The notes below the pieces were generated by a model, which saw only the letters and a program-made list of their open reading frames with translations, did not search any database and had not been told where the DNA came from. From positions 7,812,001 through 7,876,000 of the forward strand of contig NW_027361869.1 of assembly GCF_039654945.1 (NCBI RefSeq): 64,000 bases of DNA. The letters are read 5' to 3'. The translations under genes were made by a program, and so were the position numbers. This DNA is from Dendrobates tinctorius. Its lineage: Eukaryota. Positions 13,401 through 64,000 of the stretch are shown in pieces. How positions within the stretch are numbered: position 1 is the first letter of the stretch; each line of letters opens with the position of its first letter.

Positions 13401-14147
13401 TTATATTCCTCACCAATTGTTACACCGATGCCTCTACCTTGTGCCAGTCATTACACTGGCTACCCATCCACTCCAGAATTCAGTATAAACCTTTTACCCT
13501 CACCCACAAAGCCTTCCATGGCTCAGCACCACCCTACATCTCCTCCCTTGTTTCAGTATACCACCCTACCCGCGCCCTCCGTTCTGCTGATGACCTGAGG
13601 TTAGCATCCTCAATAGTCAGAACCTCCCACTCCCGTCTCCATGACTTTACACGTGCAGCGCCAATTCTTTGGAATGCACTTCCCAGGTCAATACGATTAG
13701 TCCCCAATCCCCACAATTTTAAGCGTGCCCTGAAAACGCATTTATTCAGACTGGTCTATCGCCTCAACACATTAACCTAATCTATCCCCGTGTGGCACAG
13801 CCAAAAGTTTTACCATAAGCAGTTTTCCCGCATCATGTTCTCACATGTTTTATGCATCCATTAGCCCTCTGTGTCCGTACTGTCACATACCTAACAGTAT
13901 GGCTGGTTCCTACAATCAGGGCAACTGTTACCACCCACCTTTCGTGTCTACCTCTTTCCTCATAGACTGTAAACTTGCGAGCAGGGCCCTCTTTCCTCTT
14001 GGTATTTGTTATAATCTACTGTATGTGATTACTGTTATGCTGTAATGTCTATTGTCTGTACAAATCCCCTTTGAAATGTAAAGTGCTGCGGAATATGTCG
14101 GCGCTATAAAAATAAAATTTTGTATTATTATTATTATTATTATCATT
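10446..14147 (+). mobile_element. L2-clade (CR1/L2 group) LINE inserted in the satellite, frameshifted
   Basis: APE and RT remnants; 3' end GTAAAGTGCTGCGGAATATGTCGGCGCTATAAAAATAAA followed by a (TAT)n tail; flanked by ATCAGTG at 10439-10445 and 14148-14154 (possible TSD). Confidence 0.9.
10476..13780 (+). pseudogene. L2 ORF2 (APE-RT), disrupted
   Basis: ALTETW, MGDFN, LSDH (APE); [27 protein letters not shown] (RT). A 13-bp tandem duplication CAAACACGTTTCC at 11829-11854 shifts the frame, with further stops or frameshifts up to about 12640. Confidence 0.9.
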
Positions 14148-15406
14148 ATCAGTGCCACAACCTCATCCCTGCAGAACCGCATGATCAGTGCCTCCAACTT
14201 ATCCCTAAAGAGATATATAATCAGTGCCATAACATTGTCCCCGCAAAGCTGTAAGATCAGTGCCACCACCTAATCCCTGCAGAGCTATTTGATCAGTGCC
14301 ACCACGTCATCCCCTCAGGGCTACATGATCAGTGCCACCAACTCATCCCTGCAGACCTGTATGATCAGTGCCACCACCTTGTAGCCGCAGAACTGTATAA
14401 TCAGTGCCACCACCTTGTCACCACAAAGTTGTATGATCAGTGCCACCAGTTGGTCAGCACAGAGCTGTATGATCAGTACCACCACCAAGTCCCCGCAGAG
14501 CTGTATGATCAGTGCCACCGCCTACTCCCTGCAGAGCTGTATGATCAGTGCAACCACCTCATCCCTGCACAGCTGTATCTTCAGTGCCACCACCTCTCAC
14601 TGCAGAGCTGTATAATCAGTGCCACTACCTCATCCCTGCAAACCAGTTTAGTGCCACAACCTCCTCCCTGTAGAGCTGTCTGATCAGTGCCACCACCTTG
14701 TCCGCGCTGATCTGTATGTTCAGTGCCACCACCTTTTCCCTGCAGACATGTATGATCAGTGTCCCCACCTTGTCGCCGCAGAACTGTATAATCAGTGCTA
14801 CCACCTTGTCACCGCATGAACAGTGCCACCAGTTGGTCAGCACAGAGCTGTATGATCAGTACCACTACCTACTCCTCGCACAGCTGTTGAATCAGTGCCA
14901 CCGCCTACTCCTTGCAGAGCTGTATGATCAGTGCCACCACCTAATCCCTGCAGAGCTATTTGATCAGTGCCACCACGTCATCCCCTCAGAGCTATATGAT
15001 CAGTGCCACCACCTTGTCCACGCAAAGCTGTATGATGAGTGCTACCACCTCATCCCTGCAGACCTGTACGATCAGTGCCACCACATCATGCCTGCAGAGC
15101 CTTATCATCAGTGCCTCCATCTTGTCCCCGCAGAGCTGTATGATCAGTGCCACCACCTCCTCCCTGCAGAGCTGTATGATTAGTACCACCACCTCATCCT
15201 TGTAGAGCTTTAAGATCAGTGCCACCACTTTGTCCACGCTGAGCTGTATGTTCAGTGCCACCAACTCCTCCCTGCAGAGCTGTATGATCAGTGCCACCAC
15301 CTTGTCCCCGCAAAGCTGTAACATAAGTGCCACCACTTTGTCCCCGCAGAGCTGTATGATCAGTGCCACCACCTACTCCCTGCAGAGCTGTATGATCAGT
15401 GCCAAC
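14148..15406 (+). repeat. 36-bp satellite, segment 2
   Basis: Same unit and orientation as segment 1. Confidence 0.97.
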
Positions 15407-16203
15407 TGGTATGATTGAGTCACCGTAGGAGGCAGACACAAAAATAGAAGCTACGTCCAGAAAAAAAGAGAAGTTGGCAACTATCAGATTGAATACCCCT
15501 GAACCTATCAACACAACTAGCAGTAGCCGTGGGGGATTCCTACGGTGCCCTAGACCCCTCGATCACAGCCGGAGAGCTAATTAGGCTAAAGACAGAAAAG
15601 GAAATCTAAACTGCCCCAGAGCAGACCCCAAAGTAAAAGGCAGCCCCCAGCATATAATGACGCTGAAGCAAGATGAAAAAACACTCACACAGATAGAAAT
15701 ATAGGCTGAGCAAACGATGGGGCCCAAGCTAACTAAACAGAACAGGAAAGAAAGGTTGCTGTCTGCAATCTGCCAAAACCCTATCAAAGACATAAGCCAA
15801 CAAGCTGATATGGAAAAAGACCCTGAAGCAGCTAGGCTTCAAAAACTAAATCAGCACTCAGTTATTTTCAGAAGACAGAGCTAAAGGAATTCAGCTCACC
15901 CCAGCAGGGAATGGCAGAAATCCAGAAAAACAAAGCAAAACAAAGTCAAAGCACAAATGCAAAAAGCCGAGCAGAAAACTTAGCTTTAGAAGAGCAGGAA
16001 TTCAGACTGGTCTCCAAGGATCCCACAGAGAATTCACCCGCAGGGCAGAAGGGCGTCGGCGGCCTTATATCCAGTCAGTAACTCCACTCAGCCAGTCATC
16101 ATCATTAGGCTCAGGTGCTTGATAATCAGGCTCACTACCTTTCTTTACCAGAAGAGGGAGTTCATCGGGCCTCAGTAGTGAAGGGGAAAATGAACTCACA
16201 ACA
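15407..16203 (-). repeat. 3' LTR
   Basis: Direct repeat of 20395-21191, about 20 substitutions by eye. Confidence 0.95.
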
Positions 16204-19200
16204 GTACCTCCCCCTTGAGGAGGGGTCACCGAACCCTCATCCATGCCACCAGGGCGATCCGGGTGAGACCGATGAAAGGCACGCACCAATCTTTTGGCAT
16301 GAATATCAGAGGCAGAGACCCAGGAATTATCCTCCTGACCATAACCCTTCCACTTAACCAAATACTGGAGTCTCCGTCTAGCCAGACGGGAATCCAGTAC
16401 TTTCTCTACCTCATATTCCATGTTACCTTCAACCAATACAGGGTCTGGAGGTGCCACCCCCGGAACAACAGGTTCAACAAACCTCTTCAACAAAGATTTA
16501 TGGAACACATTATGGATTTTAAATGTGACAGGAAGAGCCAAACGAAAAGAGAACGGATTAATAATCTCCAAAATCTTGTAAGGTCCAATAAATCTAGGCT
16601 TAAACTTAGGAGGAGCCACCTTCATAGCAATATTTTTTGATGATAACCACACCATATCACCAACCTTAAACTGGGGACCAATGGTCCTATGTCGGTTGGA
16701 AAACCGCTGGGCCTTTTCCTGGGAAAGAGATAACTTATCCACCACTTGGTCCCAGATCTGGTGCATTCTCTCCACCACAGTGTCAACACCTGGGCAGGCA
16801 GAGGGCTCCACCTGCCCTGAAGAAAATCGAGGATGAAACCCAAAGTTACAAAAAAAGGTGACATCAAAGTGGCAGAACTAGCTCCATTATTTAAAGCAAA
16901 TTTGGCCAAGGGCAAAAATGAAACCCAATCATCCTGATCAGCAGAAATAAAACATCTCAAATATGACTCAAAGGTCTGGTTTGTTCTCTCTGTCTGCCCA
17001 TTGGTCTGATGGTGAAAAGCAGTGGAGAAGGACAACTGAATTCCCAGCTTGGAACAGAAAGTTCTCCAAAATCTAGACACAAACTGAACTCCTCTGTCAG
17101 ATACAATGTTCTCAGGAATCCCTTGCAAGCGAACCACCTGTTGCAAAAACAGGGGCACCAACTCAGAGGAAGACGGCAACTTAGGGAGTGGTACAAGATG
17201 AACCATCTTAGAGAACCTATCACAAATCACCCAAATAACAGTCATCCTTTGAGAGACAGGCATATCAGAGATGAAATCCATTGAAATATGGGTCCATGGC
17301 CTCTTGGGGACAGGCAAAGGCATCAACAACCCACTAGAGCGAGAACACGATTTAGACCGGGAGCACGTCCCACAGGACTGCACAAAATTCCTGACATCAC
17401 GAGACAAGGAGGGCCACCAAAAAGATCGACTCACCAGATGTCTAGTAAAAAAAATACCTGGATGACCAGCCAAAGCAGAGCAATGAACTTCAGACATCAC
17501 TCTCTTCTTCCACTGGTCAGGAACATACAACTTTCCACTGGGACAACGCTCAGGTTTGTCCTCCTGGAACTCTTCCAGAGCACGTCTCAAATCGGGCAAG
17601 ATGGCAGAAAGAACTACCCCTTCGCCTAAGATGGTAGCAGGCTTGGTCACCACAGGAGAATCAGCAAAGAAGCTCCTAGAGAGGGCGTCTGCCTTGACAT
17701 TCTTAGTTCCAGGAAGAAAAGAAACCACAAAATCAAAACGTGTAAAAAAACAAAGCCCACCTAGCCTGTCTAGGGCTCAAGCGCTTAGCCGACTCTAGGT
17801 AAATCAAATTCTTGTGGTCAGTGAGGACCACGACTTGATGCTTAGCTCCCTCCAACCAATGTCTCCACTCCTCAAATGCCCCTTTCATGGCCAACAGTTC
17901 CCGATTCCCCACATCATAGTTACGTTCAGATGGAGAGAACTTTCGGGAAAAGAAAGCACAGGGATTCATTTTAGATGTTACAGGATCCTTTTGGGACAAA
18001 ACAGCTCCTGCACCAATCTCAGAAGCATCCACCTCTACCTGGAACGGAAGTGAGACATCAGGTTGCCGCAAAACCGGGGCGGAGGTGAATCTTCGCTTCA
18101 GCTCCTGAAAGGAAGAAACAGCCTCCGGAGACCAATTTAACACATCAGCACCCTTCTTAGTCAAATCAGTCAATGGCTTGGCAATACTAGAAAATTTTGC
18201 TATAAATTTCCGATAAAAATTAGCAAAACCCAAAAACTTCTGGAGGGCCTTCAAAGAAGTGGGCTGAACCCAATCGTAAATGGCCTGTACCTTGGCCGGG
18301 TCCATTTCAATAGTTGACGGGGACAAAATAAATCCCAAAAAAGAAATCCTCTGTACTCCAAAAAGGCATTTAGATCCTTTGACATACAGGGAATTCTCCC
18401 TCAAGATCCGGAACACAGTCCGAATATGTTCCACATGAGAATCCCAGTCCTTGGAGAAGATCAAAATATCATCCAGATAGATAATCAAAAATTTATCGAC
18501 AAAATCTCGGAAAATATCGTTCATGAAGCACTGGAAGACAGAAGGGGCATTAGTGAGCCCAAAAGGCATCACCAGGTACTCAAAATGTCCCTCCGGAGTA
18601 TTAAACGCCGTCTTCCATTCATCCCCATGCTTAATGCGAATAAGATTATACGCCCCCCTGAGGTCAAGCTTGGTAAACCAGCAAGCACCTTTAACTCTGG
18701 AGAATAGATCAGAAATCAGGGGTAACGGATACTGATATTTAACAGTAATTTTGTTGAGGGCACGATAATCAATACAAGGTCTTAATGATCCATCCTTTTT
18801 GGCTACAAAAAAAAACCCGGCACCTAAGGGTGACGAGGATGGTCTAATATGACCCTTCTCCAACGCCTCCTTAATATAGGATCGCATAGCCTCATGCTCG
18901 GGTACAGATAAATTGAAGAGCCGACCCTTGGGAAATTTACACCCCGGGCTCAGTTCAATTGCACAGTCATAACTCCTATGAGGAGGCAGAGACGCAGACT
19001 CATTCTCACTAAATACATCATAAAAGTCCGCCAAATAATCAGGAACATCATGCGACTGAGGAGAGGTGGAAAACACCGGAGCCTCACTAAAGGCACACCG
19101 ACAACCCCAACTCACCATAGACACAGATTTCCAATCCAAAACTGGATTATGAATTTGTAACCAGGGAAACCCCAGAACAATAGTATCATGCAGATTATGC

Positions 19201-20261
19201 AACACCAAAAATCTGCAATTTTCTTGATGGTCTGGGGCGACCCGCATTACCACCTGGGTCCAAAACTGAGGTTTATTTTTAGCCAAAGGAGTAGCATCAA
19301 TCCCCCTCAAAGGGATAGGCGTCTGCAGAGGTGTCATCGGAAATCCACAACGTTTAGCAAAATCCAAGTCCATTAGGTTTAGGGCTGCTCCCGAATCCAC
19401 AAAAGCCTTGGCGGAAAATGTGGACAGGGAGCAGATCAGAGTAATAGCCAGAAGAAACTTAGGTTGAACACTACCAACAGAAAACGTGTGTGCAAAGCGT
19501 TTCTCTCGTTTAGGGCAGACAGAAATAACATGCGAGGCATCTCCACAGAAAAAAAAACACAACTTATTACGCCTTCTGAACTCCTGACGCTGCTCTCTGG
19601 ACAAAACTCTATCACATTGCATAGGTTCAGACATTTGTTCAACAGGTGGCAACACCTCTCGTGCAGTTTTGCGTTCGCGCAAACGCCGATCAACCTGAAT
19701 AGCTAATGACATAGAATCGTCAAGACCAGAGGGAACAGGAAATCCCACCATAGTATCTTTTACGGCTTCTGACAACCCCTTCCGAAAGAGAGCAGCCAAG
19801 ACATTATCATTCCAGGTAGTAAGTACTGCCCATTTTCGGAATTTTTGACAGTACAATTCTGCAGAATCTCGATCCTGGTTCAATGCCAGCAGGGTCTTTT
19901 CAGCCTGATCAATGGCATTAGGTTTGTCATACAACAACCCCAAGGCTTGAAAAAATGCGTTCACATTAGTCAGAAAAGGATCATCTGGTTTCAAAGAAAA
20001 CGCCCAATCCTGGGGATCGCCACGCAGCAAAGAGATGACAATTTTAACCTGCTGCGCGGAGCTCCCTGACGAGTTAGGCTTCAAGGCAAAAAATAATTTA
20101 CAATTATTTTTGAAATTCAAAAATTTAGACCGATCCCCAAAAAATACATCAGGTGTAGGAATCTTTGGTTCAGCAGCATGTGAATGAGCAAGGTAGGCGG
20201 AAATTCCACGCACTTCCGCAGCGAGCTGCTCCACACGATCAGACAATTGCTTTATCTCCAT
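16065..20261 (-). pseudogene. gag-pol polyprotein split into three ORFs (17733-20261, 16622-17728, 16065-16811)
   Basis: Gag zinc knuckle (C..CG...H....C), protease FVDSGA, RT LRPCIDY/YLDD, RNase H VDAS, integrase HHCC and DDE core (ISMDF, SDRG, GQTER), GPY, chromodomain YEVEKVLD...YLVKWKGY...SW. Breaks fall at A-homopolymers near 17745 and 16850. Confidence 0.92.
16207..16216 (-). other. Polypurine tract (AAGGGGGAGG)
   Basis: Purine run 3 nt upstream of the 3' LTR start on the minus strand. Confidence 0.85.
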
Positions 20262-20383
20262 TGAGAGAAAAAAAAAAAATCCCCCTACGGCCTCAGAGAT
20301 ATAGAGGAAAAAATATACACACTTTTTTTTTTTTTTTTTTACAATTCTTTCCTGCTATTGAGTACCCTAGGATCTGCGGTATG

Positions 20384-20393
20384 GCGGGTGATT
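20384..20393 (-). other. Self-priming primer-binding site (AATCACCCGC)
   Basis: Not a TGG tRNA-type PBS; exactly complementary to GCGGGTGATT at 21029-21020, which starts 28 nt downstream of the LTR TATA box. Confidence 0.75.
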
Positions 20394-20394
20394 C

Positions 20395-21191
20395 TGTTAT
20401 GATTGAGTCACCGTAGGAGGCAGACACAAAAATAGAAGCTACGTCCAGAAAACCAGAGAAGTTGGCAACTATCAGACTGCAGACCCCTGAACCTATCAAC
20501 ACAACTAGCAGTAGCCGTGGGGGGTTCCTACGGTGCCCTAGACCCCTCAATCACAGCCGGAGAGCTAAATAGCCTAAAGACAGAAAAGGAAATCTAAACT
20601 GCCCCAGAGCAGACCCCAAAGTAAAAGGCAGCCCCCAACATATAATGACGGTGACGCAAGATGAAAAAACACTCACACAGATAGAAAGATAGGCTGAGCA
20701 AACAATGGGGCTCAAGCTAACTAAACAGAACAGGAAAGAAAGGTTGCTGTCTGCAATCTGCCAAAACCATATCAAAGACATAAGCCAACAAGCTGATATG
20801 GAAAAAGACCCTGAAGCAGCTAGGCTTCAAAAACTAAATCAGCACTAAGGTATTTTCAGAAGACAGAGCTAAAGGAATTCAGCTCACCCCAGCAGGGAAT
20901 GGCAGAAATCCAGAAAAACAAAGCAAAACAAAGTCAAAGCACAAATGCAAAAAGCCGAGCAGAAAACTTAGCTTTAGAAGAGCAGGAATTCAGACTGGTC
21001 TCCAAGGATCCCACAGAGAAATCACCCGCAGGGCAGAAGGGCGTCGGCGGCCTTATATCCAGTCAGTAACTCCACTCAGCCAGTCATCATCATTAGGCTC
21101 AGGTGTTTGATAATCAGGCTCACTACCTTTCTTTACCAGAAGAGGGAGTTCATCGGGCCTCAGTAGTGAAGGGGAAAATGAACTCACAACA
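20395..21191 (-). repeat. 5' LTR
   Basis: TG...CA termini; TATAAGG at 21057-21051 on the minus strand. Confidence 0.95.
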
Positions 21192-23419: not shown

Positions 23420-23760
23420 GCGTATCTATCCACCTGACGAAGGAGATTTATTTCCGAAACGCCCGTGGGGGCATGTTCTTATACAACTCACGTAGCGTCA
23501 ATCGGCTTACAGGTATTTTACACTTTGTGTTTTGTTGCACACGCCTTAGTGCGATTTGAATTTTTTGCACAGCTGCACCTCTGCACTTTGGGCACATTCA
23601 TTATACATATATTTATTTTCTTTTTATGTAATTATCCTTGTGTCACTATATATATGCATTTTTGTACCTGGTTCATTAATTAAGAATTTTTGATATGGAT
23701 TGGTTTTCCATTATCCATAAACACATGGCTAATGTGATTGTATACTCTAATATATATCTA

Positions 23761-23791
<31 letters not shown>

Positions 23792-33174: not shown

Positions 33175-33219
<45 letters not shown>

Positions 33220-39887: not shown

Positions 39888-39943
<56 letters not shown>

Positions 39944-47300: not shown

Positions 47301-48874
47301 GTACGATCAGTGCCACCACCGAATCCCTGCAGAGCTATTTGATCAGTGCCACCACGTCATCCCCTCAGAGCTTTATGATCAGTGCCACCATCTTGTCCCC
47401 GTAGAGCTGTATGATCAGTGCCACCACCTCCTCCCTGCAGAGCTGTATGATTAGTACCACCACCTCATCCTTGTAGAGCTGTATTATCACTGCCACCACC
47501 TTGTCCCCGCAAAGCTGTAACATAAGTGCCACCACATTGTCCGAGCAGAGCTGCATGATCAGTGCCACCACCTCCTCTCTGCATAGCTGTATGATAAGTG
47601 CCACCACCTGGTCCTTGCAGAGCTGTATGATCAGTACCAACACCTTGTCCCCGCAGAGCTGTATGATCAGTGCCACCACCTTGTCGCCGCAGAGGTGTAT
47701 TATCAGTGTCACCACCTTGTCCCCGCAGAGCTGTATGATCAGTGCCACCTCCTCATTCCTGCAGAGCTGTATGATCAGTGCCACCACCTCCTCCCTGAAA
47801 AGCAGTATGATTAGTGCTACCAACTCGTCACTGCAGAACTTTATGATCAGTGCCACCACACATTCCCTTCAGAGCTGTATGATCAGTGCCACCACCTCCT
47901 CTCTGCAGAGCTGTATGATCAGTACCACCACCTTGTCGCCGCAGAGCTGTATGATCAGTGCCACAACCTCATCCCTGCAGAGCTGTATGATCAGTGCCAC
48001 AACCTCATCCCTGCAGAGCTGTATGATCAGTGCCACCACCTCGTCCCTGCACACCTGTATCATCAGTGCCACCACATCATCCCTGCAGAGCTTTATGATC
48101 AGTGCCACCACCTCATCCCTATACAGCTGTGCTCTGTGTGTAGAAATTGCATTTTGTGTCTCCTCTTTTCTCCCAATATTCCCCTTTTGCACAATAGTTG
48201 GGTCACATAAATCCAGGAATATCTCACAGTTTTCTCCCCGGAGATGCGTCTGGTTGGGGAGTGAGTCGCATTATGAAGCTGCCCCTTATCAGTTCTCTTC
48301 CACCATTACAGGCCTCAGCGGTCACAGCTCCACAATGGGTGAGACCAGATTTTAGCAGGTCATTGCAATCAGCCGCCGATGTGGATCATCTCCTGATGTG
48401 GAGCATCTGTCACCCCCAATACTCCGCACATACGGGGTACAGGGAGGTCACAGGTCAGGGAGGCGGCAGTCAGCGGAGCCATCGCCTGTGTTACCCTTCT
48501 GGGCTCTCAGCAGCTCCAGGTCGTCGCCACATCGTACAATCAGCGTCCTGTACGATAGACATTGTAGTAAAGATCCCTGTGATGGTGACAGGAGCCGGGA
48601 ACAGGAGGAACGAGTTCCCCCAGCAGATGTATCTTCCCGGATACACAGCGATGTGCAGATCTGGAGGACGACGGCGATGATCCCGGGACCTCCTCTCCGC
48701 TCTTCCCCGGCGTCTCTGCTAGTGACAGCTACAGACGGTCGGTGGAGAAGATGGCGAAGAAGAAGCGGCGGAGGAAGCGCGCTCTGCTGTCCGGTGTCAG
48801 CCGGTAAAGGGCTTTTATTCCGGGCAGGGAAGCACAAGGGGAGAGCGGAGCTTCACTCGTTCTCAGCTGGGAAG

Positions 48875-48965
48875 AGGCGGGGCATGTATGCAGTGTCAGC
48901 CAATAGATGCTCAGGACGGTGTAGCTCAGCAGCCAATCAGTGCACAGTAAGCCTGTACATATAAC
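48875..48965 (+). promoter_or_regulatory. H1 proximal promoter (GC box, two CCAAT boxes, TATA)
   Basis: GAGGCGGGG at 48875, CCAAT at 48900 and 48933, ATATAA at about 48959. Confidence 0.75.
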
Positions 48966-49035
48966 AGACTCCTCCAGCTCCGGCCTTAGTGTTTTCCTAT
49001 CGGGAGATTTTTGTGTTTTGGCTCCGTAGCACAGG

Positions 49036-49653
49036 ATGGCAGAGACCGCGCCAGCCGCCGCTCCCCCTCCCGCAGAACCGGCTGCCAAGTCCAAGAAGCA
49101 GCCAAAGAAATCCGCCGCCAAGAGCAGCAAGAAATCCTCCGGTCCTGGCGTCTCCGAGCTGATCGTGAAAGCCGTGTCAGCCTCTAAGGAGCGCAGTGGG
49201 GTGTCTCTGGCCGCCCTGAAGAAGGCGCTGTCTGCCGGAGGGTACGATGTAGAGAAGAACAACAGCCGCCTGAAGCTGGCCGTCAGGTCTCTGGTCACCA
49301 AGGGCACCCTCCTCCAGGTGAAGGGCAGCGGCGCCTCCGGGTCCTTCAAACTCAACAAGAAGCAGGAGACTAAAGTGGCCAAGAAGTCAGCAGCCAAGCC
49401 CAAGAAACCCGTTGCTGCTAAGAAAGCCGCCAAATCTCCGAAGAAGCCCAAGAAGGCTCTGACCACGGCCAAGAAGAGCCCGAAAAAGGCCAAGAAGCCC
49501 GCAGCTGCCAAGAAAGCGGCCAAGAGCCCCAAGAAGTCGAAAGCCGCTCCCAAGCCTAAGAAGGCGACGAAGAGTCCGGCTAAAAAGGCGGCCAAACCTA
49601 AAGCTGCCAAGAGTCCGGCTAAGAAAGCCAAGAAGCCCGCGGCCAAGAAATAA
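49036..49653 (+). CDS. H1: Histone H1, replication-dependent, 205 aa
   Basis: MAETAPAA..., globular domain ([25 protein letters not shown]...GASGSFKL), K/A/P-rich tail with KSPKK motifs; intronless; 3' stem-loop. Confidence 0.98.
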
Positions 49654-49680
49654 GTTGCGGACCCAGTTATTTTACACAAA

Positions 49681-49721
49681 GGCTCTTTTCAGAGCCACCA
49701 CCCTGTCCCCGCAGAGCTGTA
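49681..49721 (+). terminator. H1 3' stem-loop and histone downstream element (HDE)
   Basis: AAA-GGCTCTTTTCAGAGCC (49681-49696)-ACCA, then AGAGCTGTA at 49713-49721. Confidence 0.95.
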
Positions 49722-49948
49722 TGATCGGTGCCACCACCCTGTCCTCGTAGAGCTGTATGATCAGTGCCACCACCCTGTCCCCGCAGAGCTGTATGATCTG
49801 AGCCACCACCCTGTCCCCACAGAGCTGTATGATCAGTGCCTCCACCTCCTCCCCGCAGAGCTGTATGATCAGTGCCACCACCCTGTCCCCGCAGAGCTGT
49901 ATGATCAGTGCCTCCACCTCCTCCCCGCAGAGCTGTATGATCGGTGCC
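49689..49948 (+). repeat. 7.2-unit 36-bp array starting inside the H1 stem-loop
   Basis: Unit 1 is TCAGAGCCACCACCCTGTCCCCGCAGAGCTGTATGA (49689-49724); the period is exactly 36 up to 49941. Confidence 0.96.
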
Positions 49949-50259
49949 TTCAGGTGACAGTTCTGTGTAATGGAGGGAAGGGGCCGATGTGCAGCAGAAA
50001 TCACGTTACTTCCATCATCCTAATTATCACCACCTGTAACCCACATCTTAGTAAGAGTGGTGTGAGGTTATAACTCCGATGTGAGAGTTGGAGCGTCAGT
50101 GACTGATTATAGAGGAGCTGCTGTACCGCTCTGGGTACTGGGAATATAGAATCGGAGCTTCCGCTGTAGAAGCCGCCTGGAGATTGGATGTGACCCTGTG
50201 TATCAGAGCAGTGGGTGATAGCTGAACTGTGAGTCAGGTTGAGCCTTCTCTGTACAGTG

Positions 50260-50831
<572 letters not shown>

Positions 50832-50862
50832 ATCTGTCCTGCCCACCTGACTGCAACACAAA

Positions 50863-50903
50863 GGCTCTTTTCAGAGCCACCCAATCCTCCCTCAAGAAGA
50901 GCG
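50863..50903 (+). terminator. H3 3' stem-loop and HDE
   Basis: GGCTCTTTTCAGAGCC (50863-50878), ACCCA, then purine-rich AAGAAGAGCG. Confidence 0.93.
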
Positions 50904-51719
50904 AATTCCTGACATTTAATACTGCCGGCTTTGCTACCAACCATGGTCCTGATCATGCTCGTGGTGGTGAGGCTGGTAGTTTTGCTACCCCTGCTGATGC
51001 TGGCATGGCAGGTGGTGCAAATGACCTTTTTTGGGGTTATGGGCAGAGTATTAAAAAACAACTAGACTTGAGAAGGCCTAACAGATGGACAGGCAACTTC
51101 CATCATGTTGGTGTTACTGTTAATAGTCGCCGGCCTTCTGTCTGCGGCAACCACACTGCTTCTTCCTGGCTGTTGGGGCGCTATGCCTCCCTCCCCCTAT
51201 GCTGCTGTCCTCACTTTGCATGTCCTCCTGCTAGCTTGGGTCAGTTACTATATCATCCACCACTTCATCCTGCTAAACACTGTCTCTTGTGCCTCCTTCG
51301 AGCCTGCCACCTGGTTCCAGCAGTCATGGTACTTTATTTCCCAGGGCGTTCTGATGCTTCCTGTATCCCTGGGTGGTCCTTACCAGGTCAGCTCGCCCAG
51401 GGTGGGTTGGAATCATGGCCCAGAGGGTCCACTCCAGGAGTCCTCACACGAACAAGGGTGGGTGGTTTTGCTGGGCGTAAAATACTGGTTATGGAAAAGG
51501 TTGAGGTGTAACCCACAGGGCAACATGTTTGCCAGCCAACACACTTAGTGTATGGGCATTACAAGTCTAGGAGATCTGGTTCTTTTTTTAATGAGACATT
51601 TTTTAAAAGGCCCTCTATATTTTATTCCAAGGGGGGATTGGAGTTATTGGGGTGCATATGACTTGGTAGCAGGGCAGGCCTTGCCGTGAATCCATAATAC
51701 ATGAGGGTGTGCACGAATA

Positions 51720-52070
51720 TATGGGGAGTATACAGCACTGTATGGATACAGGATATTCAACTATAAAATACTATATGTTGGATTATCAGCACTATATGGA
51801 GATATATAATACTACTTGAAGGGTATACTGCACAATGTGTCCGTATACAACAGTATTTGGCAGCTTACAGCACTATATGGGGGTATACAGCCACATATGA
51901 TGTTATATAGAACAATATGGAGGGCCCACAGCACTTTGTGCAGAGTATTCAGCAATATGTAGGTATCAGCACTACCTTATGCTCATGTCACTATATGGAG
52001 GGTATCCAGCACTATGTGAGCCTATACATACAATAGCTATTTGGGGTTTACAGCACTATATGGGGGTATT
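51720..52070. repeat. Degenerate ~20-bp minisatellite (TACAGCACTATATGGGGG-like)
   Basis: Recurrent CAGCACTATATGG/CAGCACTGTATGG variants; similar units resume after the CR1 fragment at about 52310-52400. Confidence 0.6.
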
Positions 52071-52084
52071 CTGTAGATGATTCT

Positions 52085-52260
52085 GAATGGGAGGAGACAC
52101 GGATTAGATATTAAAGAGAACTTTTTGACAGTGAGGATGATCAATAAGTGGAACAGGCTGCCACTGGAGGTGTTGAGTTCTCCTTCAATGGAAGTCTTCA
52201 AACAGAGGCTGGACAGACATCCGTCTGGGAGGATTTAATGAATCTTGCACTGAGCTGGAA
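52085..52260 (+). mobile_element. CR1 LINE 3'-end fragment
   Basis: Translates as ENFLTVRMINKWNRLPLEVLSSPSMEVFKQRLDRH, the typical CR1 ORF2 C-terminus. Confidence 0.8.
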
Positions 52261-52728
52261 CATTCCATGATTCAGGCTTATATAGAACAGATGCTCTCGG
52301 ATTTGTGTCTGCAGCACTAGATGGGGAGTATACAGCACACGTAGGCTTTGTAGTGCTGTATACCACCCAGTAGGTGGTATGGAGGATGTGCAGCACCGTA
52401 CGGGGTGTGTATACATTGCCTGCAGCTCCAGGGCTGATCAGTCTCAACTCCACTTCCAGCAGTGATCGGAGCGGACCCCACACGGAGACCCGGTAACGTT
52501 ATATCTGGGCGTCTCCGTGTGGGGTCCGCACTGATCACAGGAGGCCGCATCTAGCACAGATCGGATGATACAATCCGCACATGTTCTACCAGGAGGAGCC
52601 CGATGTGCTGAGCGCTGCCGGGAGAACACGTGTACATGAGGAGCAGCAGGTAGAAGGGCAATAAGGAGTTAAACGGAGGAGGAAGCACGTCTATCGATTG
52701 GTCGGTTCCTGTGGGCGGAGCTTTATAA

Positions 52729-52753
52729 CCGTTTGATGGTTTGAATCTCCCGC
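52729..52753 (+). promoter_or_regulatory. Composite MYB-like/CHR/E2F element in the H3-H4 spacer
   Basis: CCGTT-TGATGG-TTTGAA-TCTCCCGC, with ATTGG and GGGCGG just upstream. Confidence 0.55.
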
Positions 52754-53893
52754 TCAGTCGTGCTCTCGGCCCTCGATCATTAACCCTTCAGTGACTGTTC
52801 TCTGCTTGTGGAAGAGACATCATTTCCCAATCACTGTCAGGAGTAAGCGGCCATTATACCTGCAGATCATGTGGTAAAGTGAGATTGTATTAACCCCTCA
52901 ATCCCCAGAACGGTGGCCGCTGCTCATTATCTCACCAACCACATTTATGCAGTTATCTTGTATGCGAGACTTTTTCTCCTCTGGAGGGATGGCGCTCTCC
53001 GCACTCAGAAATACACAGGCTCCGGAGCCGCCTCATCTCCAGTCCTCGCTATGGTCCGCCAGGCTCGGATGACGGCGCTGTACATTCGGGGTGCGGACTC
53101 TGTTCTCTCTTCTGGCTCCGACTACTGATAAATAGGATAAGACACCAGAAACCTCCCCGTCATGAGGGGAACGAGCCGCTAATGTCCGGCTGCGGGGAGG
53201 GAGCGGCTTCATCCATCAGCCCGAGCACAGGAGACCGCTGCCGGCTGTAGCTCCAGTCCATGTTATTAGGAGCAGTCAGGAGGTCACAATCAGTGGCCAC
53301 ATGTAGATGGTAAATGAGGAGGGTGGTAGTGATGAGATGCAGGCGCTGGACATACCGGGGAGCCGCCACTAACAAGGGGGAGCAGTTACCGGTACAGGAT
53401 GTGACCGCTCCTCACTGGATTTACACCAATCCTGAGAAATAGGATCTGACCAGACTCCATCACCGCAGTCATCAAATATCAGGAATTGTAGAACACATGT
53501 GGGCGGCTCTGATAGGAGCCTTTGGGGGAGGCGCATCTATCCAGCGACAATCCCCGGGAGTATTCGCTGCCTCCTGACACACACACTGATCTGATCAGGA
53601 AGACCTGTAGCAGAATCACTTTCATCTCACGGCAGAACTTGGATTTCTGCTCTGTAGTGACCACATCACAGCGAGGTATGTACTGTGGTGCAGAGATGTC
53701 TGTGCTGCACAGTGCGGATATACTGTATGCCCCCAGAACCTGGCAGCTGTATATTATAGATCAAGGAGAATAAACCACATCACCCCAAGTCCGCGGTGCC
53801 AGCTCCAGTATGGAAGGAGGAAAGTGCAAGACACATGCCAGGCTGTGACAACTAGTATACTTACAGGCACCAGATTGCAGGAATAGGAAATCG

Positions 53894-53935
53894 TAGCCTC
53901 TCAGGTAGAAGATGTGGGTGGCTCTGAAAAGAGCC
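53894..53935 (-). terminator. H4 3' stem-loop and HDE
   Basis: Minus strand GGCTCTTTTCAGAGCC (53935-53920), ACCCA, then GAGAGGCT. Confidence 0.92.
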
Positions 53936-53965
53936 TTTGGGTTATCAGCACAGAAAAGAATACAA

Positions 53966-54304
<339 letters not shown>

Positions 54305-54325
54305 CTAAAACCGAACGACCCCTCC

Positions 54326-54467
54326 TTTATATACAGGAGAGACGGACCAGAGAGAGAACTGCAGAGATGACGCGCCCCAGGGCGGGGCTTACAGAATCCA
54401 CATGAGCTCCTCCCTTCCTCTGCTGTTTGGCTGAGCACAGAACTGTTCGAGAGTTTGAATTTCCCGC
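54326..54467 (-). promoter_or_regulatory. H4 promoter (TATA, GGTCCG H4 element, GC box, MYB-like/CHR/E2F element)
   Basis: TATATAAA at 54333-54326, GGTCCG at 54348-54343, GGGCGGGG at about 54380, CTGTT-CGAGAG-TTTGAA-TTTCCCGC at 54443-54467. Confidence 0.8.
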
Positions 54468-55618
54468 TCATTGTTCAGTTTCCCTTTTCTTTCCAGCTTG
54501 TAATATAATGTCACTTCTTCCCCTGTGATGAGAATTATTCCAGATTCAGCCTATAGATAAATGGGCAGCACAAATAGAGGGGAGCAGACACGGCCCCAGT
54601 ATATGTCAGGAGGACAGAACAGACTGTAACCACAGATATTACAGGCAGCCGCCCAGGGGATCTCACACCGGTAGATACACTGCCTGATATAAGGCTCAGT
54701 CCTCAGTAATCACAGGATCTCCGGTTTTCATAGAGAATATTACATTTATATTAACCCCAGGGCTAAGCCCTCTCTGCCTTTATTCAGGTCTTATATTCCC
54801 GCATTAGGGACATTTGTGCTATGATAGGAGTCATCATTACTTCCGGCAATTATGACACTATTGTCCTTATATTTGTGTTTTCTTCTTCCCCTGGCAATGA
54901 TTCTTTTTTCCACCACATCATAGCTCACATTGCTGCAGAGTAGGGACCTGCTGTCAGCTACAATTAATTAGGAAAAACAATTATTAACATAATGACAGAA
55001 AAGGCTGAAAATCAGAGCTCAGCAGTGATCCTGACTGATCCCAGCCGCCAATATCGCCCCATATCCTGCAGTAATTATTTAAAAAACATCTGTGAGGAGG
55101 ATGTGATGGGAGATGATGTCATGACATGTCTGACCTAGAGGATCCTCACATCACAGTGTAATGTATTGTGCACTGAGCTCTCGGCAATCTTCTCTACATG
55201 ATCGCACATTTCCCATCACAGACCTCCTGCCTGGAGCTGCAGGTGGGATCTGCTTAGAAGAGCAGAATTGGTCTCCCCTGAAATGTCTCTTGTAGGATAC
55301 ATCTCTAGCCAATATATTGTCTCCACAATACTGATTATGACGAGAAAGGGAGATGTGATCGCCTGCAGGTCAGACACACGGGGCATCACAGCATCTGCCT
55401 AACGCGGATTCATTCTCTAACCAGGAACAGCTGCAGACTCCTGTATGGGATGTAAGCGACCAGCGACCTCTCAACACCTGCAGATTCCCCGACATCGCTC
55501 CGTCCTGGGACCGCGCGTTATATGGAGACAAAGAACAGAAAAAGCGGGAACTGCAAACGTGTCAACCATTGGGAACATTAGCTCCTCCCCTCCCTCTGCG
55601 GATTGGCTGAACACAGGA

Positions 55619-55643
55619 CGGTTAGGGGGTTTGAATTTCCCGC
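55619..55643 (+). promoter_or_regulatory. Composite MYB-like/CHR/E2F element in the H4-H2B spacer
   Basis: CGGTT-AGGGGG-TTTGAA-TTTCCCGC within a ~65-bp paralog of 54405-54468. Confidence 0.6.
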
Positions 55644-56143
55644 TGCTTCTAAAATGTCGTTACCGCTTCCCTTTACAGTGAAGACTCCAGCATAATCTCT
55701 AGATAAAACTGCACCGACACAAATGTCTCCTGTTATTTGAGGAAAAACACGAGAATCATGAACTAAGTGCAGAGAGGAAAATCGTCAGCTCACTGTCTGG
55801 TGCTGCATGGGGGAGAAAATTCAGTCTCAAAGCATCCCGGCTTAGAAAGTGTTATTAGTCATCATGGTGTATCATGAACTAAACCGAATCATGTTATACC
55901 AAATGAATGAGACCCCAGAATATCAAGATCTGTGGAGCAAGGGGTTAAAGAGTAATCCCTGAACACAGAGCAACTTATGGAGAAGTGACCAGGTTATTAT
56001 TTAGAAGGTCCTCGGTTCTCACAATCTCCTTGGTAGCATTCATCATCCCTACTTCCTTCACCTGTCACTTCCCGTCACTAGACGCAGAGACCCAGGCGGT
56101 GGAGCAGACAACTCGGGGAGACGGGAAAGGACACAGGAGCAGC

Positions 56144-56185
56144 CACAGCTCTGATGGAGATGGGGTGGTGGCTCTTAGAAGAGCC
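56144..56185 (-). terminator. H2B 3' stem-loop and HDE
   Basis: Minus strand GGCTCTTCTAAGAGCC (56185-56170), ACCACC, then CAGAGCTGTG. Confidence 0.93.
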
Positions 56186-56219
56186 TTTGGGGTGATGGCG
56201 GAGCAGCAGACTGAGCAGA

Positions 56220-57307
<1,088 letters not shown>

Positions 57308-57340
57308 GCGCTGCCGCCGATCTCTGTCCACAACACCAAA

Positions 57341-57382
57341 GGCTCTTCTAAGAGCCACCCACACCGTCGCCACAAGAGCTGA
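57341..57382 (+). terminator. H2A 3' stem-loop and HDE
   Basis: GGCTCTTCTAAGAGCC (57341-57356), ACCCA, then AAGAGCTGA at 57374-57382. Confidence 0.93.
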
Positions 57383-57665
57383 CGCCGCTGATCTCTGCGT
57401 GCTCACATGGGACTGACGTTAGACACCACGGGCTGCCGCCACCAGTTTGTAGGTTGGTGCCCATACACACTTGATTCCGGGGTTCAACACAAAACACGTG
57501 AGGATGCCCATGTCTGGGTTATCACATGAAGCCTCAGACCTGTGTGGGGAGAGGAGTCCTCGAATAGTCACAGGAAATGTCCCTCATTAGTGAATGTCTT
57601 GATACTCGGGCCCCTGACTCCGCTGTGGAGATTACATGCGGTTATCACGTCCCGGAGTATCGGGG

Positions 57666-60329
57666 GATGGCGGCCGGTGATTGTCCACATCAGTGACTGC
57701 TGCTCCTCCCGGAGGGCGATCCCGTGATGGCGGCTCTGGAGGGCCGGACTCTGCGCGGTTCTCTGTGTGACCGGATTGTGATGTCCGCTAATAATCCTCG
57801 GCGGAAGAAGAGCGGGAAGTTCAAATCCCCAAACGGATCCTGCGATCAGACAATGAGCGGGAATCCTCGGTTAAGCGCCGCCCTCAGCCTTCAGCGATGT
57901 ACATAGACGCCTTTCCTCCTCTGTTTAACCTCTTACTTGCCTTGTTCCTGCTGATCCCCTCTTATTTACCAGTGTTCATAGATGCGCCACCTTCATCTCA
58001 CATCGGGCTCCTCGAGAACATCTGCTGCTTATAGCCCCCTGTAATCAGTGCAGAAACAGCTGGGAGTCCCGATAATACTGTAAGTGACTGAGGAGATTGC
58101 GGCACGTGCAGATCGAGCTAATTGCCATCATTGGTGAAAAGTCCTAGAGCTACACAGAGGGTTAACCCCACATTAGTGTAGTGTAATTATCCGCAGGTTC
58201 ACTGAACAAATATTATGTAACAGAAGAAAATTAATTAAGCCAATAAACCACAAATCCTCCTGCTTTTCTGTAATTACTAAAAAAAAAAAAAGCACAGATG
58301 AAAACCTATGTACTGATGGGGGAGCGTGATAGGCGACGCGCTGGTTCCAGCATCAATGTGCTCTCCATCCGCATGCCATACTCCATACCCCGTCCCCCAT
58401 TTTTGGCCTGTATGATCAGTGCCACCACTTCACCCCTGCAGAGTTCTATAATGAGTGCCACCACCTCGTCCCTGCTGACCTGTATGTTCAGTGCCACCAC
58501 CTTTTCCCTGCAGAGCTGTATGTTCAGTGCCACCACCTTTACATGCAGAGCTGTATGATCAGTGCCACCACCTTTTCGCCGCAGAACTGTATAATCAGTG
58601 CCACCACATTGTCAACGCAAGCTGTATGATCAGTGCCACCACCTACTCCTTGCAGAGCTGTATGATCAGTGCCACCACCTAATCCCTGCAGAGCTTTTTG
58701 ATCAGTGCCACCACGTCATCCCCTCAGGGCTACCTGATTAGTGCCACCACCTTGTACACGCAAAGCTGTCTGATCAGTGCCACCACCTTGTCCACGAAAA
58801 GTTGTATGATCAGTGCCACCACCTCGTCTCTGCAGACCTGTATGATCAGTGCCACTACATCATCCCTGCAGAGCTTTATGATCAGTACCACCATCTTGTC
58901 CCAGCAGAGCTGTACGATCAGTGCCACCACCTATTCCCTGCAGAGCTGTATGATCAGTGCCACCACCTCCTCCCTGCAGAGCTGTATGATCAGTGCCACA
59001 ACCTCATCCCTGCAAACCAGTATGTTTAGTGCCACAACCTCCTCCCTGTAGAGCTGTCTGATCAGTGCCACCACCTTGTCCGCGCTGAGCTGTATGTTCA
59101 ATAACACCACCTTTTCCCTGCAGACCTGTGTGATCAGTGCCACCACCTTGTCGCCGCAGAACTGTATAATCAGTGCCACCACCTTGTCGCCGCAGAGGTG
59201 TATGATCAGCGTCACCAACTTTTCCCTGAAGAGCTGTATGATCAGTGCCACCACCTCATCCCTGCAGGGCTGTATGATCTGTGCTACTGAAACATCCCTG
59301 CAGAGTTGTATGATCGGTGCCACTACCTCATCCCTGCAGAACTGCATGATCAGTGCCACAACCTCATCACTGCAGAGCTGTATGATCAGTGCCAACATCT
59401 TGTCCCCACAAAGCTGTATCATAAGTGCCACCACTTTGTCCGAGCAGAGCTGTATGATCAGTGCCATCAAATTATCCCGGGAGAGCTCTATTATCAGTGC
59501 CACCACCTACTCCCTGCAGAGCTGTATGATCAGTGCCACCATCTCCTCCCTGAAAATCTGTATAATCAGTGCCACCACCTCCTCTCTGCAGAGCTGTATG
59601 ATCTGTGCCACCACCACATCCCTGCAAACCAGTATGTTCAGTGCGACAACCTCCTCCCTGCAGAGCTGTATAATCAGTGCCACCACCTTGTCTCTGCAGA
59701 GCTGTATGATTAGTGCCACCACCTGGTCCTTGCAGAGCTGTATGATCAGTAACACCACCTTGTCGCCGCAGAGGTGTATGATCAGTGCCACCACCTCATC
59801 CCTGCAGGCTGTATGATCTGTGCTACTGAATCATACCTGCAGAGCTGTATGATCGGTGTCACTACCTCATCCCTGCAGAACTGCATGATCAGTGCCACCA
59901 CCTTGTCCCCACAAAGCTGTATCATAAGTGCCACCACTTTGTGCGAGCAGAGCTGTATGATCAGTGTCACCAACTTTTCCCTGCAGAGCTGTATGATCAG
60001 TGCCATCACCTCATCCCTACAGGGCTGTATGATCTGTTCTACTGAATCATCCCTGCAGAGCTGTATGATCGGTGCCACTACATCATCCCTGCAGAACTGC
60101 ATAATCAGTGCCACGACCTCGTCACTGCAGAGCTGTATGATTAGTACCACCACCTTGTGGCCGCAGAGGTGTATGATCAGTGCCACCTCCTCGTCCCTGC
60201 AGAGCTGTATGATCTGAGCCACTATCTCATCCCTGCAGAACTGCATGATCAGTGCCTCCAACTTATCCCTAAAGAGATGTATAATCAGTGCAACCACATT
60301 ATCCCCGCAAAGCTGTATGATCAGTGCCA
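57666..60329 (+). repeat. Segmental duplicate, copy 2
   Basis: Near-identical to 4987-7649. Confidence 0.93.
57812..57836 (-). promoter_or_regulatory. Composite MYB-like/CHR/E2F element downstream of H2A
   Basis: Minus strand reads CCGTT-TGGGGA-TTTGAA-CTTCCCGC. Confidence 0.55.
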
Positions 60330-63300
60330 CCACCTTGTCCCTGCTGAGCTGTATAATCAGTGCCACCACGTCCTCCCTGCTGAGCTGTATGATCAGTGCC
60401 ACCACCTCCTCCCTGCAAAGCAGTATGATTAGTGCCACCACCTCGTCACTGCAGAACTTTATGATCAGTGCCACCACATATTCCCTTCAGAGCTGTATGA
60501 TCAGTGCCACCACCTCCTCTCTGCAGAGCTGTATGATCAGTACCACCACCTTGTCGCCTCAGAGGTGTATTATCAGTGTCACCACCTTGTCCCCGCAGAG
60601 CTGTATGATCAGTGCCACCTCCTCGTCCCTGCAGAGCTGTATGATCAGTGCCACCACCTGGTCCTTGCAGCACTGTGTGATCTGTGCCACTACCTCATCC
60701 CTGCAGAGCTTTATGATCAGTGTCACCACCTCTTCCCTACAGAGCTGAATGATCAATGCCACCACCTACTCCCTGCAGAGCTGTAAGATCAGTGACACAA
60801 CCTTGTCCCTACAGAGCCTTATGATCAGTGCCACCGCCTCCTCCCCATAGAGCTGTATGATCAGTGCAACCACCTCATCCCTACAGAGCTGTATCATCAG
60901 TGCCACCACCTATTCCCTTCAGAGCTGTATGATCAGTGTCACCACCTCCTCTCTGCAGAGCTGTATGATCAGTACCACCACGTTGTCGCCGCAGAGGTGT
61001 ATTATCAGTGCCACCACCTTGTCTCCACAGAGCTGTATGATCAGTGCCACCTCCTCGTCCCTGCAGAGCTGTATGATCAGTGGCTCCAACTTATCCCTAA
61101 AGAGATGTATAATCAGTGCAACTACATTGTCCCCACAAAGCTGTATGATCAGTGCCAACACCTCTTCTTTGCAGAGCTGTATGATCAGTGTCACCACCTC
61201 TTCCCTGCAGAGCTGTATAATCAGTGACACCACCTCATACCTGCAGAGCTGCATGATTAGTGCCACCATCTTATCCACACAGAGCTGAATGATCAATGCC
61301 ACCACCTACTCCCTGCAGAGTTGTAAGATCAGTGAGACAACCTTGTCCCTGCAGAGCCTTATGATCAGTGCCACCGCCTCCTCACCACAGAGCTGTATGA
61401 TCAGTGCCACCTCCTCGTCCCTGCAGAGCTGTGTGATCTGTGCCACTACCTCATCCCTGCAGAGCTGTATGATCTGAGCCACTAACTCATCCCTGCAGAG
61501 CTGTATGATCAGTGCCACAACCTCATCCCTGCAGAGCTGCATGATCAGTGGCTCCAACTTATCCCTAAAGAGATGTATAATCAGTGCAACCACATTGTCC
61601 CCGCAAAGCTGTATGATCAGTGCCAACACCTCGTCCTTGCAGAGCTGTATGATCAGTGCCACCATCTTATCCACACAGAGCTGAATGATCAATGCTACCA
61701 TATCCTCCCTGCAAAGCTGTATAATCAGTGCCACCACCTCCTCTCTGCAGAGCTGTATGATCAGTGCCACCACCTCATCCCTGCAGAGCTTTAAGATCAG
61801 TGCCACCACCTGGTCCTTGCAGAGCTGTATGATCAGTACCACCACCTTGTCGCCGCAGAGGTGTATGATCAGTGCCACCACCTCATCCCTGCAGGGCTGT
61901 ATGATCTGTGCTACTGAAACATCCCTGCAGAGCTGTATGATCTGTGCCACTACCTCATCCCAGCAGAACTGCATGATCAGTGCCACAACCTCGTCACTGC
62001 AGAGCTGTATGATCAGTGCCACCATCTTGTCCCCACAAAGCTGTATCATAAGTGCCACCACTTTGTCCGAGCAGAGCTGTATGATCAGTGCCATCAAATT
62101 GTCCCCGCAGAGCTGTATGATCAGTGCCACCACCTACTCCCTGCAGAGCTGTATGATCAGTGCCACCATCTCCTCCCTGCAAAGCTGTATAATCAGTGCC
62201 ACCACCTCCTCTCTGCAGAGCTGTATGATCTGTGCCACCACCTCATCCCTGAAAACCAGTATGTTCAGTGCGACAACCTCCTCCCTGCAGACCTGTATGA
62301 TCAGTGCCACCACCGTGTCGCCACAGAACTGTAAATCAGTGCCACCACCTTGTCACCGCAAAGTTGTATGATCAGTGCCACCACTTTGTCCGAGCAGAGC
62401 TGTATGATCAGTGCCACAACCTCATCCCTGCAGAACCACATGATCAGTGCCTCCAACTTATACCTAAAGAGATGTATAATCAGTGCAACCACATTGTCCC
62501 TGCAGAGCTGTATGATCAGTGACACCACCTCTTACCTGCAGAGCTGCATGATCAGTGCCACCAACTACTCCCTGCAGAGCTGTATGATCAGTGCCACCAC
62601 CTTATCCACACAGAGCTGTATAATCAGTGCCACCTCCTACTGCCTGCAGAGCTGTATGATCAGTGCCACCATCTAATCCCTGCAGAGCTGTATAATCAGT
62701 GCCACCACCTCGTCTCTGCAGTGCTGTATGATTAGTGCCACCACCTGGTCCTTGCAGAGCTGTATGATCATTACCACCACCTTGTCGCCGCAGAGACGTA
62801 TGATCAGTGTCACCACCTTGTCCCTGCAGGTCTGTAGGATCTGTGCCACCACCTATTCCCTTCAGAGCTGTATGATCAGTACCACCACCTTGTCGCCGCA
62901 GAGGTGTATGATCAGTGTCACCAACTTTTCCCTGCAGAGCTGTATGATCAGTGACACGCCACCACCTCATCCCTGCAGGCTGTATGATCTGTGCTACTGA
63001 ATCATCCCTGCAGAGCTGTATGATCGGTGCCGCTACCTCATCCCTGCAGAAGTGCATGATCAGTGCCACCACCTTGTCCCCACAAAGCTGTATGATAAGT
63101 GCCACCACTTTGTGCGAGCAGAGCTGTATGATCAGTGCCATAAAATTGTCCCCGCAGAGCTTTATGATCAGTGCCACCACCTACTCCCTGCAGAGCTGCA
63201 AGATCAGTTCAACCACCTCATCCCTGCAGAGCTGTATCTTCAGTGCCATCACCTCATACCTGTAGAGCTGTATGATCAGTGCCACTACCTCATTCCTGCA

Positions 63301-64000
63301 AACCAGTATGTTCAGTGCCACAACCTCCTCCCTGTAGAGCTGTCTGATCAGTGCCACCACCTTGTACACGCTGAGCTGTATGTTCAGTGCCACCACCTTT
63401 CCATGCAGAGCTGTTTGCTCAGTGCCACAACCTCCTCCCTGCAGAGCTGTACGATTAGTACCTCCACCTCATCCTTGTAGAGCTTTAAGATCAGAGCCAC
63501 CACCTTGTCCACGCTGAGCTATATGTTCAGTGCCACCACCTTGTCCCCGCAAAGCTGTATCATAAGTGCCACCACTTTGTCCGAGCATAGCTGTATGATC
63601 AGTGCCATCAAATTGTCCCCACAGAGCTGTATGATCAGTGCCACCATCTGCTCCCTGCAAAGCTGAATAATCAGTGCCACCACCTCCTCTCTGCAGAGCT
63701 TTATGATCAGTGCCACCACCTGGTCCTTGCAGAGCTGTATGATCAGTACCAACACCTTGTCGCCGCAGAGGTGTATGATCAGTGTCACCAACTTTTCACT
63801 GCAGAGCTGTATGATCAGTGCCACCACCTCATCCCTGCGGGGCTGTATGATCTGTGCTACTGAATCATCCCTGCAGAGCTGTATGATCGCTGCCACTACC
63901 TCATCCCTGCAGAACTGCATGATCAGTGCCACAACCTCGTCACTACAGAGCTGTATGATCAGTGCCACCACCTTGTCCCCACAAAGCTGTATCATAAGTG
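58408..64000 (+). repeat. 36-bp satellite, next array (runs past the window end)
   Basis: Same unit and orientation; starts after the same leader sequence as at 5728. Confidence 0.98.

Follow-up and report, generated by a model that had tools for sequence, protein, structure and literature searches.

What is the source of the 36-bp satellite that surrounds the histone genes in this part of the Dendrobates tinctorius genome, and how is it related to the short array of the same unit that begins behind the histone H1 gene? The window, that is the whole stretch of DNA analyzed here, comprises 64,000 nucleotides of contig NW_027361869.1 (GCF_039654945.1, positions 7,812,001 to 7,876,000). A consensus scan places about 926-933 units of 36 bp in it, which make up 52% of the window and, like H1, are all on the + strand. 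A first-pass annotation of this DNA had proposed that the satellite arose by amplification of the H1 processing signal, and the content, order and spacing of the elements in the unit support this proposal. With the caveats given below, we put the probability that the satellite derived from an H1-type histone mRNA 3′ processing signal at roughly 0.8.

The satellite lies on both sides of a cluster of five histone genes (48121-58407, a feature to which no strand is assigned). H1 is an intact coding sequence of 205 aa (ORF, 49036-49653, +), and the top matches of its protein are dendrobatid H1 proteins at 91-94% identity. This agrees with the Dmrt1 preprint, in which GCA_039654945.1 is assigned to Dendrobates tinctorius; an assembly table in PMC12822217 has Rhinella marina next to that accession, but the accessions there are visibly shifted against the species. 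The other genes are H3 (50421-50831, +), H4 (53966-54277, −), H2B (56220-56597, −, including a masked N run at 56363-56499) and H2A (56915-57307, +). A separate stem-loop and HDE-like element accompany each gene of the cluster, and no repeat adjoins the 3′ signals of H3, H4, H2B or H2A within the cluster. The spacer between H3 and H4 holds a degenerate 20-bp tandem repeat of about 14 copies (51787-52069, 54% matches).

Upstream of the cluster, the satellite comprises a large array of 131 units (5728-10445, +), a segment flanked by two retroelement insertions (14148-15404, +; TRF, Pfam) and the main tract of about 700 units with small interruptions (21192-48120, +), which stops 916 bp short of the H1 start codon. 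A further array downstream of the cluster (58408-64000, +) continues past the end of the window. The spacing between satellite units is exactly 36 bp in 886 gaps, and these long head-to-tail arrays, built of one unit in one orientation, are satellite DNA in the usual sense. Since 36 bp corresponds to 12 codons, stop-free frames occur on both strands, with ORFs of up to 407 aa composed of 12-residue repeats (e.g., 9229-10452, −). These satellite ORFs show no sign of being genes, and gene callers may report them.

Three retroelements, recognized by their Pfam domains, break up the arrays. The first is an L1-like non-LTR retrotransposon (1-4987) with an uninterrupted 1268-aa ORF2 containing endonuclease and reverse transcriptase (RT) domains. 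A second non-LTR element (10476-13780) has its endonuclease and RT on separate ORFs, and an LTR retroelement (about 15500-21100, −) carries gag, RT, RNase H and integrase.

The left part of the window contains the tail of a previous copy of the same arrangement (4987-7700, +), which corresponds to 57666 to about 60400 at 99.9% identity; the first ~2 kb of the 131-unit array are likewise 99.9% identical to the sequence from 58408 onward. The two copies of the cluster tail and array start are separated by 52,680 bp and are 99.9% identical over about 2.7 kb, a recurrence indicating that one macro-unit of about 52.7 kb, repeated as a whole, comprises both the histone cluster and the satellite. This macro-repeat is therefore very young or actively homogenised. 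The L1-like element sits in the previous cluster copy and is missing at the paralogous position before 57666, so its insertion is recent. No fixed higher-order period was found in the arrays by autocorrelation, because indels break the phase. Where identical units recur, they do so about 8-10 kb or 52.68 kb apart, as a result of segmental duplications. Short (AT)n microsatellites were also observed in the main tract, at 23750-23783, 33178-33216 and 39892-39938; spaced roughly 6.7-9.4 kb apart, they fit the shorter of these two lags and suggest that segments inside the array have been duplicated.

The stop codon of H1 is followed by a 16-nt stem-loop with a 6-bp stem and a 4-nt loop (GGCTCT / TTTC / AGAGCC, 49681-49696, +), the expected SLBP binding site, which was found by motif search and by Rfam RF00032. 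The Rfam match (Histone3, 49676-49722) scores 35.9 bits, against a gathering score of 34. The satellite unit is entered from within this structure. Unit 1 of the H1-adjacent array (49689-49724, +, read from the sequence) is also the H1 processing signal: it starts with the last two loop bases, which together with the 3′ arm AGAGCC cover 49689-49696. The ACCA cleavage context follows directly 3′ of the stem (49697-49700), then a C-rich spacer and then CAGAGCTGTATGA, within which the HDE core AGAGCTGTA occupies 49713-49721. As far as can be judged from the letters, all canonical elements of a histone 3′ signal are present in unit 1, in canonical order and spacing. We take these elements to work as established for histone mRNAs, with SLBP on the stem-loop, the U7 snRNP on AGAGCTGTA and a CPSF73 cut after ACCA. 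The first-pass annotation had read the unit in the same way, as 3′ stem arm, cleavage site and HDE, and had described the same layout at the H2B 3′ end. The Rfam match, the position of ACCA and the predicted U7 duplex described below bear out the first reading, and the H2B 3′ end, which reads AGAGCC ACCACC ... CAGAGCTGT, bears out the second.

The purine core of unit 1 starts ~10-12 nt past ACCA and the predicted cut, a spacing consistent with the fixed distance rule between cut and HDE described in PMC7026596. Pairing was predicted with the 5′ region of U7 common to human and mouse (PMC7026596), which may not be the frog's own sequence; on this basis the unit forms a duplex of 9 bp with an energy of −14.0 kcal/mol, a value reached by 1 of 500 shuffles. 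The predicted duplexes of the cluster's own histone genes range from −9.9 to −18.2 kcal/mol, and in its predicted pairing with the conserved 5′ end of vertebrate U7, the HDE of the unit is roughly on a par with the HDEs of these genes. One contig of run X15, from the same species, terminates at 49699, approximately at the predicted cut, contig ends in general not being marks of molecule ends and units 2-7 being obscured by cross-mapping of the satellite.

Behind unit 1 the repeat continues in phase. TRF delimits this mini-array at 49689-49948 (+; period 36, 7.2 copies, 88% matches, score 408), and the H1 3′ end and the in-phase 36-mer read just as quoted in the first-pass annotation. The phase of the array begins exactly inside the loop of the H1 stem-loop, and later units start with TCGGTGCC, TCAGTGCC and TCTGAGCC. 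Compared with an ordinary histone 3′ signal, the part from loop to HDE is thus repeated 7.2 times behind H1, with ~900 more copies nearby. The repeated units also differ from such a signal in having no 5′ stem arm inside the unit and in carrying T at position 5, which must pair, in 97% of cases. A complete stem-loop that could bind SLBP is absent from units 2-7 and from the large arrays, and Rfam Histone3 gave no match in the satellite arrays.

As the key test of origin we chose a comparison independent of the H1 junction, in which the satellite consensus was aligned with histone 3′ signals that have no repeat of their own. The consensus aligned with the H2B, H4, H3 and H2A signals at scores of 15, 13, 11 and 11, respectively (shuffle mean 3, sd 1.6), and these scores were reached by 0-4 of 5000 shuffles. 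Against the H1 signal the score was 28 (shuffle mean 3.4, sd 1.6), in agreement with the earlier observation that the 36-mer behind H1 matches the consensus of the large arrays. The unit is identical to the H1 signal at 32 of 36 positions, and its identity to the H2B signal is far lower. Thirteen of the 14 bases of the arm and ACCACC and all nine of the HDE match, with the correct spacing between them. Given the resemblance to four repeat-free histone signals, there is good support for descent of the satellite from a histone processing signal. That an unrelated satellite merely adjoins the H1 stem-loop and resembles it by chance is hardly conceivable. Such a coincidence could draw only on the fact that satellites are abundant in frog genomes generally, and it would have to account for the agreement in arm, ACCACC, HDE and spacing, for significant alignments to four independent histone signals, which the shuffle tests disfavour as chance, and for an array phase that starts exactly in the loop.

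We infer that descent ran from the H1 signal to the satellite, and we propose the following course for it. A tandem duplication would have extended from inside the loop of the stem-loop to just beyond the HDE. The resulting units would contain the 3′ stem arm, the ACCA context, the C-rich spacer and the HDE complementary to U7, without the 5′ stem arm. Unit 1 would keep working as the actual H1 processing signal, and units 2-7 would form a short array subject to turnover by slippage or unequal exchange. Finally, the unit would have been amplified into arrays tens of kilobases long, which now space the histone clusters in the ~52.7-kb macro-repeat.

Preservation is far higher in the H1-adjacent array than in any part of the large arrays. 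The element AGAGCTGTATGA is kept in seven of seven mini-array units and the CpG at unit positions 22-23 in six of seven, and positions 25-36 have zero substitutions. The HDE 9-mer is intact in all seven units, compared with 37% of the large-array units, and among 706 contiguous windows of seven units in the large arrays there was none in which all HDE 9-mers were intact. The mean pairwise distance between units is 3.76 in the mini-array vs 7.75 (minimum 4.24) in the large arrays.

Decay of the large arrays is neutral, marked by CpG loss, a bias from GC to AT and an unprotected HDE. Their most variable unit positions are 16-17 and 22-23, where TCG has changed to TCA or TTG and CCCCG to CCCTG or CCCCA; this CpG-type variation at 22-23 indicates that the inferred ancestor had CG there. 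Divergence amounts to 0.49 at the two inferred CpGs vs 0.10 elsewhere, substitutions are biased from GC to AT, and no protection of the HDE was detected in the large arrays when base type was controlled (p = 0.20). Their behavior is that of neutral, probably methylated satellite DNA. Selection would explain the integrity of the mini-array, but no better than recent turnover by slippage together with a gene-proximal position in unmethylated DNA. Gene tables give gaps of 912 and 1020 bp between H1 and H3 in other clusters on the contig, compared with 768 bp here; the differences of 144 and 252 bp equal exactly 4 and 7 units, which is consistent with copy-number turnover of the mini-array between clusters, as far as gene tables can tell.

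To place the two kinds of array relative to each other, 44 common large-array variants and the five distinct H1-adjacent units were analyzed with IQ-TREE, using the H2B signal as root. Units 1 and 4 are basal in this tree, followed by units 3 and 2, and all 44 large-array variants fall into one nested clade (UFBoot 85, and 88 for the node leaving out units 1 and 4). The H1-adjacent units thus take the basal position that the first-pass annotation had predicted for them. This placement depends on about two of the 36 sites (A5 and C15), with UFBoot values below 95, and A5, one of these two tree-defining characters, is fixed in unit 1 by stem pairing.

The same sites bear on how closely the present mini-array is related to the large arrays. 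C15 occurs in five of seven mini-array units vs 5 of 926 large-array units, and the combination of T9 with TCC, which occurs in the mini-array, is found in 0 of 159 large-array TCC units. These private variants indicate that there was no recent exchange between the mini-array and large-array lineages. With T5 in 97% of the units and C15 in so few of them, the present mini-array is not the immediate parent of the large arrays. Units 5 and 7 of the mini-array have the TCC spacer that is typical of one large-array subfamily; import of these two units from the large arrays was considered and ruled out, as T9+TCC is absent there. The first-pass annotation had also pointed to large-array units that still begin with TCAGAGCCACCACC. 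Units of this kind are present at 7929, 24121 and 63491, with three more at 29531, 33618 and 40351, but they make up only 6 of 926, and the idea that they retain the ancestral start did not hold. A is found at unit position 5 in 18 of 926 units (1.9%), a frequency similar to that of minor bases at other well-kept positions and thus at the ordinary level, so units starting with TCAGAGCC represent mutational noise; they were rejected as retained ancestry.

Sequences from relatives give a minimum age for the H1-adjacent array. Organism A (run X1) is a relative about 6% divergent, with flat, DNA-like depth. One of its contigs (93 nt) corresponds to 49626-49718 with 5 differences and takes in the stop codon of H1, the stem-loop and unit 1 up to a point inside the HDE; another (562 nt) begins at 49919, within the final unit, and runs on across the distal flank. 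Organism A thus has the mini-array junctions on both sides, and the array predates that split. Satellite-type contigs were found in organism A and in organism C. A Pristimantis contig that ends inside H1 contained no unit and no tandem repeat, and two Logan contigs, probably not from frogs, have ordinary single-copy H1 3′ ends. Neither the H1 signal nor the satellite junction was found in metagenome scans (0 matches each).

Within the window, the edges of the large arrays show no H1 remnant, no H1 pseudogene and no homology to the H1 flanks, so seeding from the H1 3′ end is not directly visible, and whether the proximal mini-array represents the seed lineage of the large arrays, as the term 'seed array' would have it, is a proposition to which we give even odds. 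The bare edges would also fit a secondary spread, in which the satellite came from another histone 3′ signal, such as another, now dead H1 or H2B, and in which homologous exchange in the stem arm and ACCACC made the H1 array a recipient instead of a seed. The clustering of units 5 and 7, with their TCC spacer, within a large-array subfamily in the tree, at low support, agrees with this as well. Both the different source and the exchange are unlikely in our judgement: the private variants of the mini-array speak against recent import, the rooted tree has units 1-4 at its base, the unit matches the H1 signal at 32 of 36 positions and H2B far less well, and both array junctions already existed in the relative. 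Derivation from the H1-type signal is therefore the reading we retain.

To what extent the repeats are transcribed was considered from sequencing depth. RNA-labelled runs of three species contain satellite words at very high depth, with a value of 1,896 in X11 vs 0 for the flanks. The X15 contigs have a depth of 6,000-66,000 over the H1 gene body, compared with 29 in the upstream and 191 in the downstream flank, a 6.6-fold excess on the downstream side in these unstranded contigs. Over units 5-7 the depth of the unstranded contigs rises to 80,000-129,000. DNA carry-over multiplied by a copy number of roughly 1000-fold could be the source of the satellite depth. Units 2-4 (49716-49817), which are more distinctive, were observed at 3,700-8,000, as deep as the H1 3′ UTR and 20-40 times the depth of the distal flank; in unstranded contigs this could be cross-mapping of satellite or H1 read-through.

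In mammalian extracts, cleavage independent of SLBP requires a U7 duplex of about 15-16 bp (PMC7026596). Compared with this length, the 9-bp duplex would make the unit at best a weak fail-safe, and the extra units, having no stem-loop, may serve at most as weak U7 fail-safe sites. A selected function of the tandem HDEs, whether in fail-safe U7 cleavage and termination, as a sponge for U7 snRNP or as a scaffold of the histone locus body, would agree with the complete set of HDE 9-mers in the mini-array, which no large-array window equals, with its unsubstituted positions 25-36, with the deep satellite words in RNA-labelled runs and with a predicted duplex strength inside the range of real cluster genes. 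We nevertheless hold it to be very improbable, since the large-array HDE decays like all other positions, slippage turnover and an unmethylated position near the gene explain the integrity of the mini-array equally, carry-over at ~1000-fold copy number can yield the depth seen in unstranded contigs, and the mammalian requirement for a longer duplex applies where SLBP is missing. Slightly less remote, though still a long shot, is the more specific idea that read-through transcripts containing HDEs bind U7 snRNP and form a reservoir or scaffold tethered to the locus, or that the seven units are fail-safe sites. If this were true, a satellite that is not inert would account for the fact that the H1-adjacent array alone keeps all of its HDEs. 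We favor the reading in which the large arrays would be without function.

Satellites are known to have arisen from rDNA, tRNA and transposon fragments. Full-text literature searches in which satellites were paired with histone, stem-loop, U7 or HDE turned up no satellite like the present one, and a major satellite derived from a cis-acting RNA-processing signal appears to be undescribed. The closest setting is that of the newt Notophthalmus viridescens, in which, according to work from the Gall laboratory in 1981, histone clusters are reportedly separated by long satellite tracts that are read through on lampbrush loops; the satellite unit there is said to be about 220 bp. We know of no report that the newt satellite was derived from a histone processing signal. 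As in the newt, a five-gene histone cluster lies within tens of kilobases of a satellite and is repeated together with it (here at 52.7 kb); unlike the newt unit as reported, the frog unit is 36 bp long and probably derived from a histone signal.

Among frogs, the PcP190 satellite was derived from 5S rDNA, according to the mention of Vittorazzi et al. (2011) in PMC12191414. Like PcP190, the present satellite is a frog satellite that comes from part of a tandem multigene family. It differs in its source, which is a cis-acting RNA-processing signal of 36 nt and not a transcribed RNA gene, and in that it stays physically interleaved with its source genes. New here are the start of the array in the loop, the junctions in the relative, the rooted tree, the 52.7-kb macro-repeat and the contrast in preservation between the two kinds of array. 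The origin of the satellite is well supported and apparently undescribed.

With the source, the short proximal array and the amplified satellite all within a few kilobases, the locus is an unusually clean case. In every 50 kb of it there are roughly a thousand sites to which U7 snRNA could bind, at the very place where U7 snRNP concentrates, so that a role of repeat RNA in organising the histone locus body can be tested. If the repeats are neutral, the locus would be a good model for the birth of a satellite by slippage at a functional element.
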